This document shows, piece by piece, positions 46,017 to 49,000 of a stretch of 64,000 nt of DNA. The notes beneath the pieces were generated by a model. The model ran no database searches. It had not been told where the DNA came from and was given only the letters and a program-made list of their open reading frames with translations. How positions within the stretch are numbered: position 1 is the first letter of the stretch; each line of letters opens with the position of its first letter. The translations under genes and the position numbers were made by a program. The stretch is from the NCBI RefSeq assembly GCF_001194135.2, contig NC_069000.1, positions 7,000,351 to 7,064,350 on the forward strand, in the 5' to 3' direction. Origin of the DNA: Octopus bimaculoides (Eukaryota).

Positions 46017-49000
46017 GTAGCAAAAGTTAAGGAAAATAATCAAATGACATACTAAAAAATGTTAATTAAATGGCAGCACAAGACAAAATATTTCAGCTAA
46101 GAAACATTATATATAAACATATATACAAATATCATACACACACACATATAATAATATTCACACATACTGTATAATATATATATATATATATATATATATA
46201 TATATATATATATGTGTGTGTGTGTATACATACATACATATATATATATATATATATATACACACACACACGACAGGCTTCTTTCAGTTTCCGTCTACCA
46301 AATACACTCACAAGGCTTTTGTTGACCCAGGGGCCATAATAGAAGACATTTTCCCAAGGTGCCATGCATTGGGACTGAACCTGGAACTACATGGCTGGGA
46401 AGCAAGCTCCCAACCACACAGCCATACCTATATATATATATATATATATAGGAAATTACACAATTATGGCATACATTATCCTGTAGCAAAGATTAATCTC
46501 CTCAAAGGATAAGTTTAAACTTAATCGGTTCAGCATTTAATCACCTTTTCCTCCAAACAGACATTGTGTCCCTACAGAACATAATTATAAAATTCCCTTT
46601 AACCCTTTTTGTGACCAACACACTTCAGACTGTTCCTGGTGTTGCAATACACAAAATTTTAATCTCAACATGTTTATACTTAAATTAATCCTTCCATCAG
46701 AAATGTATCTAAGAATATTTTGTTATGTTGCAAATTAATAACGTAGTAACTAGTTATTTTAGTAAATCCCAGCATATTGTTATTTTGAAAATCAATTGAA
46801 ATACACAATGCCTTTCAATACAAATGGGGTAACACAACAACTAACAAAAGTAAGAAGAAAAAAACTGAAGATTTGATAAGCGTAAGTCAACCAGTCCCTA
46901 TAACTTAACACAGAAAACTGACATTACAACAAAAGCACCTAAACCCCAGGCATAGCTTTAAGTAGTTTATATAGCAACAAGAAATGAACAGGTTTCTACT
47001 GGTTGACTGTAAACAGGCTGAGGCATGACTGGGTTCAAATCAATGAGACCATATTTTATATATCCAACTTAACAAGGATGCCCTGTTAGAACACTGAATA
47101 CGGCACTATTAGCCTTGAGAGATCCTCTCATATAGGGGTTTGGTGCCTAAAAGTATACAGATAGATCATAGACGAAATTCGTCAGTCATGGGTGCTGGAA
47201 TTCCCATGTGGGTGTGAGTGTATATGTGACATACACATATTTTTATTTATATAAATATATATATATATATAGTAAGTTGTTCATGGATTTCCTCTGAAAG
47301 GGAATTGACTCAAAAAGGACTCAATACAAGACAAAATAAATATAAGTGACATAAAGGGCAGCAAGCTGGCATATTCGTTAGCACACTGGGCAAAATGCTA
47401 AGCAATATTTCATCTGCCATTACGTTCTGAGTTCAAATTCTGCCGAGGTCGATTTTGCCTTTCATTCTTTCGGGGTCGATTAAATAAGTACCAGTTATGC
47501 ACTGGGATCGATGTAATCGACTTAATCCCTTTGTCTGTCTTGTTTGTCCCCTCTATGTTTAACCCCCCCGCCCCGTAAGCAATAAAGAAATAAATACAAG
47601 TGGCATAAATGAATACGTAACATATGTACGTTTCTTTTACTGCTGCAAATAGTATTGAAAAAATTTGCACACTTGCCAGGTATTCATTAATTGATACACA
47701 CATATACATGTGTGTATATATTTATTGGACCTATTAAGGATTAAGTTCCCCAACTCAACATTGAACTGTAAAGAGGTGACAGGTTAGCAGTGTTGCATAA
47801 TGGCGACCACACAATAGATACCTTTATAAAGCAATTTTCCCCACAACCAGAAAACATGGAAGACTGGAAATGAAGAACTCTACTTGCACGTCAGTGACAC
47901 TTGTTTACAACTATCACAGAGTCAAAGCAAGGAGACAGTAAAGCACACATACATAGATACTTGCATATAACAGGCTTCTTTCAGTCTCTGTCAACCAAAT
48001 CTACTCACAAGGCTTTGGCTGGCCCACACAGCCATGCATATGTATCTATACATTAGACACCACATATTATAACCAGAGAATCAACACCAAGATGAACAGC
48101 TTGCAGCTAAGTTAATTATATAATTGATGGGTTTGACCGTATGAGACACTGTGACAGAAGAACCCCATCCAAACTTTGCCAACTTGGAAACAAAAGCATG
48201 AGGATGATGATGAAAATGATGGTGCTGGCATTGAGGTTGCTAGATGAAAAATTTAAACCAATGCTAGCAGAACACCAATATTCAATTTTTAGAAAAAAAG
48301 ATATTTCTTCCGGTGATTTTGTCTGACATTTCTTGGAATTTATCTTGCATTTGTTGTAGAATCAACTGAACCTATAAGAAAATGACAAAAACAAACTGAA
48401 ATAAATGCACAAAACAAACAAATAATAACTTTTATTCACATACATGTATGTGTGTGTGTATGTATATGTATATATTACTCAACATGTTAGTTGTTGAACA
48501 GATCACGTTCAAGGCTTTCTCTTGCCTGTTTATACATGTTTAAAATTTTATCAGAGCATGATGGAATGATGCTGTGATGTTAATCTATAGGTGCATCAAT
48601 AAAATGCTACCAAAACAGCTGCAGTAAGTTCTAAACCCTATTTCATCATCATTTAACATGCTGGCATGGATTGGATGGTTTAACAGGAACTGACCAGCTG
48701 AAGGGCTGTTCAGGCTCCATGTTTGTTTTGGCATAATTTCTATGGCTAGATGCCCTTCCTAATGCCAACCAACCACTTTACAGACTGTACAGGGTGCTCT
48801 TACGCAGTACTGACACGGTTGCTTTTTACATGGTACTGGCACCTACAAACCTGTAAGATTAGGGACACTCAGCTGGAGAGGACGAGCTTGTATGCAAGGG
48901 CAACTGTGCTTTTACTTAACTTGATATGTCTTTTCAAGCACAGCAAGCCGGCTGGAGCCTTGGTCCTCTATCATCCCCTTGTGTGTCCCGGTGTTCTTTT

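Follow-up and report, generated by a model that had tools for sequence, protein, structure and literature searches.

The 64,000-nucleotide (nt) stretch of Octopus bimaculoides DNA that we analysed (NCBI RefSeq assembly GCF_001194135.2, contig NC_069000.1, forward-strand positions 7,000,351 to 7,064,350; hereafter the window) carries on its minus strand the HSBP1 gene, the second intron of which begins with AT, ends with AC and bears the motifs of a U12-type (minor) intron. Reading the minus strand of positions 45800-48600, together with a tblastn search for exon 1, resolves the gene into three coding exons and two introns (Table 1; here and below a slash marks a splice junction). Joining the exons yields ...DKITGR/MDEMAKRIDDLEKNIATIMTDAGLDNIE followed by a stop codon, which can be aligned to HSBP1. 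The 90-amino-acid product matches the Pfam family HSBP1 (PF06825) over the whole profile (positions 1-51 of 51) at 89.6 bits, against a curated cut-off of 28.6 (E = 1.2e-25), and is 55-70% identical to arthropod, annelid and other HSBP1 proteins.

Table 1. Features of the HSBP1 locus, in coordinates of the window.
Feature	Position	Strand	Description	Basis
HSBP1 coding exon 1	54204..54323	-	ATG at 54323; 40 codons, MADVSS...QDLTNY	tblastn with human HSBP1
Intron 1	48372..54203	-	ordinary U2-type GT-AG, phase 0, GTAAGT ... TTCTTATAG, 5832 nt	read from sequence
HSBP1 coding exon 2	48305..48371	-	VQLILQQMQDKFQEMSDKITGR plus first base of Met codon; 67 nt; preceded by normal acceptor TTCTTATAG/G
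Intron 2	46017..48304	-	U12-type AT-AC, phase 1, 2288 nt	sequence and orthologous AT-AC introns
HSBP1 coding exon 3	45931..46016	-	last two bases of Met codon, then DEMAKRIDDLEKNIATIMTDAGLDNIE; TAA stop 45933..45931
U12-type 5' splice site ATATCTTTT	48296..48304	-	consensus ATATCCTTT; derived T at +6 = base 48299
U12 branch-point sequence TTCCTTAAC	46026..46034	-	A residues 46028 and 46027 are the 12th and 11th nt from the intron 3' end
Terminal AC, 3' splice site	46017..46018	-		read from sequence
Short dispersed repeat, SINE-like family A, in intron 2	47352..47531		~180 bp; 10 other copies or fragments in window, 75-84% identity
Short dispersed repeat, SINE-like family B, in intron 2	46260..46445		4 other copies in window; then (TA)n and (TG)n microsatellites to ~46103
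Family B repeat fragment in intron 2	47949..48025			blastn, intron versus rest of window

Exon 2 terminates with ...ATC ACC GGA AGA A at 48305 and intron 2 opens with ATATCTTTTTTTCT at 48304, while its 3' boundary reads ...GATTATTTTCCTTAACTTTTGCTAC/TGGATGAAATGG, with exon 3 starting TG GAT GAA at 46016. No junction other than AGA A/TG GAT yields the conserved protein. The bases on either side of each boundary differ from their counterparts (the intron begins with A and exon 3 with T; exon 2 ends with A and the intron with C), so the boundary cannot slide to another dinucleotide pair, and for an mRNA reading ...AGA ATG GAT... AT and AC are therefore the only possible intron ends. The original prediction of an AT-AC intron with this junction is correct to the base, and all of its sequence statements were confirmed on the minus strand: the joined exons give the conserved protein, the branch site is a perfect consensus with its A 11-12 nt from the 3' end, and the donor departs from consensus only at +6. 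In numbers, the donor matches the U12 consensus at 8 of 9 positions, with C at +5 (48300) and the sole mismatch a C>T change at +6, and the branch site fits the TCCTTAAC consensus and lies in the range, roughly 10-20 nt from the 3' splice site, that is characteristic of U12 introns. Translation running on from exon 2 would meet an in-frame TGA seven codons into the intron (AAT ATC TTT TTT TCT AAA AAT TGA), and no GT occurs in this interval; retention of intron 2 would give ...ITGRNIFFSKN and then a stop, without the C-terminal half of the coiled coil.

We rejected bare motif counts as evidence for a U12 intron, as they come close to what chance alone would give in a window this rich in AT: TTCCTTAAC was found twice versus 0.94 expected from shuffled sequence and RTATCYTTT seven times versus 4.6, with 25 relaxed donor-like sites versus 18 in shuffles and 11 relaxed branch-plus-acceptor sites versus 6.9. 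What lies far beyond chance is that two conserved coding exons, in frame with each other, have both motifs precisely at their edges, and that nine other taxa show the same arrangement. Separately, a candidate second U12 intron in a neighbouring gene, with a GTATCCTTTT donor (61654-61662) and a TCCTTAAC..AG/AC site (58835-58854) about 2.8 kb apart on the minus strand, was rejected as probably a coincidence, because it is flanked by microsatellites and sequence of non-coding appearance and motifs of this kind are about as frequent in the window as chance predicts.

The spliced product is 100% identical over 90 of 90 amino acids to RefSeq proteins XP_014770348.1 (O. bimaculoides) and XP_029647543.1 (O. 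sinensis), the EukProt set for O. bimaculoides contains the same 90-amino-acid product, and the DNA of the O. bimaculoides record (CM046620.1, GCA_001194135.2) is found identically within the window. Because the product equals XP_014770348.1, HSBP1 in O. bimaculoides is already annotated with exactly this junction, and for this genome gene finders have not missed the gene, contrary to the original claim. The cluster at 90% identity also contains an Argonauta hians protein and O. vulgaris AGZ63439.1, both near-identical, 90 amino acids long and with the ...ITGRMDEMAK... junction; the O. vulgaris record dates from 2013 and presumably derives from complementary DNA, since it is older than any octopus genome. 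The general worry about gene finders is real, as the rotifer Brachionus plicatilis illustrates. At its HSBP1 site (REGN01007554.1, 637-697) lies a 61-nt AT-AC U12 intron, AGA A/ATATCCTTTT...GCCTTAATTCTTTTGTAC/TC GAT GAA, and the deposited protein, 59 amino acids long, lacks 14 conserved residues (SDQIINRIDEMGHR); the model instead forces a GT-AG intron, CAAT/GTCAGA...CATAG/GATCGAT, and is a mis-annotation caused by the U12 intron.

In the genomic loci of orthologues, we read the boundaries at the intron that follows the conserved (R/K) codon (Table 2). An AT-AC intron stands at the same codon position and in the same phase, phase 1, in nine other taxa that include a plant and both branches of Bilateria. 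Besides the nine species of Table 2, the comparison includes a tenth sequence, an RNA-derived Logan contig (SRR25097169, 95-403) that is probably of cephalopod origin and whose exon 2 encodes the same peptide as that of octopus. In this contig intron 1 has been removed and intron 2 kept, starting with ATATCCTTTTCATC at ~309, so that the called open reading frame ends inside intron 2. The retained intron has the consensus donor ATATCCTTTT, which fits slow removal of the U12 intron even when its donor is consensus.

Table 2. Boundaries of the AT-AC intron at the HSBP1 site in orthologues.
Species	5' boundary	3' boundary	Intron length
O. bimaculoides	A/ATATCTTTTTTT	TTCCTTAACTTTTGCTAC/TG	2288 nt
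O. sinensis	A/ATATCCTTTTTC (begins ATATCCTTTTT)	TTCCTTAACTTTTGCTAC/TG	6396 nt
Argonauta hians	A/ATATCCTTTTCT	TTCCTTAACTGTGAGTTCAC/TG	451 nt
Cloeon dipterum (mayfly)	ATATCCTTTTC	TTTCCTTGATTCGTCACAC/TA
Ridgeia piscesae (annelid, tubeworm)	ATATCCTTTTT	GGCCTTAACCGTGTGTAC/TA
Hyalella azteca (amphipod)	ATATCCTTTA	TTCCTTAACTGCCCAGCAC/TA
Lepisosteus oculatus hsbp1b (spotted gar)	ATATCCTGAA	TTTCCTTGACCTGAGCAC/TT
Arabidopsis thaliana At4g15802	AAG A/ATATCCTTATATC	TCTCCTTGAC, then 24 nt ending TTCAC/TT GAT GAC
Brachionus plicatilis (rotifer)	AGA A/ATATCCTTTT	GCCTTAATTCTTTTGTAC/TC	61 nt

Mammalian orthologues of the intron are already catalogued. In a supplementary table of Olthof et al. 2019 (PMC6717393; Minor Intron Database), HSBP1 and HSBP1L1 each appear among the minor-intron genes of mouse and of human, and the human HSBP1 5' splice site is given there as GAA/ATATCCTTT, with the consensus donor, and the branch site as TTGTCTTTAACT. 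These introns resemble that of octopus in gene family, in AT-AC subtype, in the exonic context GAA/ATATCC... and in having a U12 branch site near the 3' end, and the gar intron, which we checked directly, has the codon position and phase of the octopus one. They differ in that the mammalian introns have C at +6 and O. bimaculoides T, in that the octopus branch site TTCCTTAAC is nearer to consensus than the human TTGTCTTTAACT, and in that the octopus intron has been enlarged by dispersed repeats. With the same intron present from Arabidopsis to gar and listed for human and mouse, membership of the U12 class is both ancestral for HSBP1 and already known, which answers a question that the original prediction had left for a database check.

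Surveys of minor introns already take in the clade to which the octopus intron belongs: O. sinensis is a reference species of Larue & Roy 2023 (PMC10639083), which describes molluscs as relatively enriched in minor introns, and according to Olthof et al. 2024 (PMC11347168) the mollusc orthologues of human minor introns are in most cases likewise minor. O. bimaculoides also encodes the AT-AC-specific factor DROL1 (bioRxiv 10.1101/2020.10.19.345900). A full-text literature search for HSBP1 together with U12 returned nothing relevant, the catalogue entry being in the supplementary table of PMC6717393; no HSBP1 entry was found in the text of the Moyer 2020 supplement, and no splicing information was found in the literature on At4g15802 or on O. 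vulgaris HSBP. The Arabidopsis locus (At4g15802, chr4 ~1221-1639) has two peculiarities of its own, namely that its best branch match, TCTCCTTGAC, lies ~26 nt from the 3' end versus 9-12 nt in the animal orthologues, and that an additional GT-AG intron splits VQNLLQQM/QTRF.

Among the ten sequences compared, T at +6 occurs only in O. bimaculoides, and the other nine have C. The comparison across cephalopods that the original prediction had proposed thus gives C in O. sinensis, A. hians and the cephalopod-like contig alike, and because the sister octopods, this contig and all outgroups carry C, the T arose on the O. bimaculoides lineage. Relative to O. sinensis, the donor shows the C>T change plus one extra T in the following run (ATATC-TTTTTTT-C versus ATATC-C-TTTTT-C). 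Such donors are rare but have precedent. In combined mouse and human string counts (PMC6717393), ATATCCTT appears 302 times versus 4 for ATATCTTT, GTATCCTT 722 times versus 35 for GTATCTTT, and TATCC 1329 times versus 66 for TATCT, the last being an upper bound as some of its matches fall in branch-site strings. In the same table, RASGRP3 has the identical 9-mer (CAT/ATATCTTTT) in mouse and human, with 5' splice-site scores of 53-59 against a cut-off of 50, and RALGAPA2 has the +6T donor CTT/GTATCTTTT in both species, while the HSBP1 and HSBP1L1 donors score 92-98. Since the RASGRP3 and RALGAPA2 donors are each conserved between mouse and human, +6T donors are functional. These two genes are unrelated to HSBP1, and their +6T is old and shared between species, whereas that of octopus HSBP1 is recent and confined to one lineage.

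The C residues at donor positions +5 and +6 reportedly base-pair with a GG of U11 and, at a later stage, with a GG of U6atac, and because C6 pairs with G in both small nuclear RNAs (snRNAs), its replacement by U leaves a G·U wobble. Rough nearest-neighbour estimates in the fixed canonical register put the U11 duplex at -5.4 kcal/mol with C at +6 and -2.7 kcal/mol with U, and the U6atac duplex at -4.5 and -1.8 kcal/mol, so that either duplex loses about 2.7 kcal/mol; for U11 this difference was reproduced by a duplex prediction run without constraints. For U6atac the unconstrained prediction fell into a poly-U/purine register that is not biological, and it was replaced by the fixed register. 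The original claim that the change weakens U11 pairing is borne out by these estimates, as a shift from G-C to G·U. In intron F of P120 (NOP2), mutation of the CC at +5/+6 reportedly blocks splicing and compensatory changes in the snRNAs are said to rescue it, which is the basis for expecting an effect of the octopus change. The mutations in question were CC>GG transversions, which abolish pairing, whereas the octopus C>U keeps a G·U wobble, and a milder effect is therefore expected in octopus.

Compared with O. sinensis, the HSBP1 coding sequence has 12 synonymous and no nonsynonymous differences, and compared with Argonauta it has 36 and 5. The absence of nonsynonymous changes relative to O. 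sinensis led us to reject the reading of this locus as a pseudogene, and because purifying selection acts on the coding sequence in the very lineage that carries the T, splicing still works. Alignable intron sequence is ~88% identical to that of O. sinensis, and the last 31 nt, which contain the branch site and the terminal AC, are identical in both Octopus species.

The family A and B insertions in intron 2 are also present in the O. sinensis intron and, being common to both species, predate their split; the gene as a whole spans 19.3 kb in O. sinensis versus 8.4 kb in O. bimaculoides, although the proteins are identical. The short Argonauta intron (451 nt) is consistent with repeat-driven expansion in Octopus, and intron size turns over fast around a fixed U12 core. 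The original description of a 2.3-kb intron holding several short interspersed nuclear elements (SINEs) stands as to length and the presence of short dispersed repeats. A transfer RNA (tRNA) origin of the repeats could not be shown: ARAGORN found no tRNA in 45900-48400 and Rfam gave no match at the gathering threshold in the whole window, and because neither gave anything the SINE label reflects size and dispersal or copy number only. Elsewhere in the window, a (CT)n(CA)n microsatellite precedes a run rich in CAG and CAA, cagcagcagcaacaacagcagcag, in the presumed 3' untranslated region of HSBP1 (45810-45900, minus strand), and at 24001-26000 the G+C fraction of the window is 0.235, markedly low against ~0.35 in the rest.

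Intron 2 is very probably the O. bimaculoides orthologue of an ancient U12-type AT-AC intron of HSBP1, carrying a derived and tolerated T at +6. The intron splits the region encoding the HSBP1 coiled coil, one base into the codon downstream of the conserved Arg/Lys (phase 1), and the U11/U12 di-snRNP (a particle of two small nuclear ribonucleoproteins) would recognise the ATATC(T)TTT donor together with the TTCCTTAAC branch site, whose A residues lie 11-12 nt before the intron end. Removal of the intron by the minor spliceosome, which we infer from these motifs and their conservation, would join 48305 to 46016 and give the full 90-amino-acid protein. The lineage-derived T, with the T run one base longer, would place a G·U wobble at +6 in pairing with U11 and later with U6atac, so that recognition may be weakened but not abolished; the consequence would most probably be a nearly neutral drop in donor strength that is tolerated. 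Several points weigh against this interpretation. The +6 T is known from one assembly, where it lies at the edge of a T homopolymer; the donor was scored by proxy, through the identical catalogued 9-mer of RASGRP3 that exceeds the published position weight matrix (PWM) threshold; the snRNA segments behind the rough energy figures are human rather than octopus sequences; and the junction in O. bimaculoides rests on annotation, conservation and the uniqueness of the junction.

The first of these points bears on whether the T is real, and a base change coupled to a T run that differs in length by one base does fall in an error-prone homopolymer context. It is nonetheless unlikely that an assembly or sequencing error, or a private polymorphism, conceals a normal allele with the consensus ATATCCTT, as homopolymer length errors do not typically take the form of a C>T substitution and the flanking intron, at ~88% identity to O. 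sinensis, has diverged enough that real differences are expected. Removal by the major spliceosome, whether the intron were handled as U2-type AT-AC or cryptic GT-AG sites were used, is extremely unlikely. Rare U2-type AT-AC introns do exist, and a weakened U12 donor could in principle favour conversion between classes, but the donor is ATATC... and not ATAAGT-like, the branch site is perfect and well placed, and the conserved protein requires a uniquely AT...AC junction. Cryptic sites fare no better, with no GT from the end of exon 2 to the in-frame TGA, and the only upstream GT, within exon 2, would remove conserved residues just as it does in the Brachionus model.

Another reading is that the +6 C>U change makes removal of intron 2 rate-limiting, as the original prediction suggested. 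As an adaptive switch in O. bimaculoides, it would set the level of HSBP1, a brake on HSF1, by the activity of the minor spliceosome, and it could respond to stress, for example through stress-stabilised U6atac, thereby tuning the attenuation of the heat-shock response. Minor introns are generally spliced slowly, and U6atac is reportedly stabilised by p38 under stress. The estimated loss of pairing amounts to roughly half of the short duplex, +6T donors score far lower in the published PWM scheme (RASGRP3 versus HSBP1 and HSBP1L1, above), and intron 2 is retained in the cephalopod-like transcript despite its consensus donor, which fits intrinsically slow removal. Against this, the change is a single transition in a setting where neighbouring intron sequence has diverged by ~12%, +6T donors are stably conserved in ordinary mammalian genes, and the consensus C persists in close relatives whose protein is the same, so that nothing points to selection for the T. 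We regard such a switch as speculative and distinctly improbable, and favour the ancient U12-type intron with a tolerated donor variant.

The octopus intron is not new: it is ancient, catalogued in mammals and correctly modelled in RefSeq, and the part specific to the O. bimaculoides lineage is a single transition. As its annotation is correct and the minor intron to which it is orthologous is both catalogued and deeply conserved, it matters little as it stands. HSBP1 does offer a compact test case for annotation pipelines, since a U12 intron lies in the middle of a gene of 60-90 codons and a predictor limited to GT-AG introns silently drops conserved residues. O. bimaculoides and O. sinensis, with identical proteins, branch sites and intron 3' ends and a donor that differs at +6, form a clean natural contrast for the cost of a G-C to G·U change in vivo. 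If the +6 U were indeed rate-limiting, the pair would amount to an experiment of nature in which a single base differs and O. sinensis serves as control, asking whether the strength of a U12 donor tunes a stress pathway.

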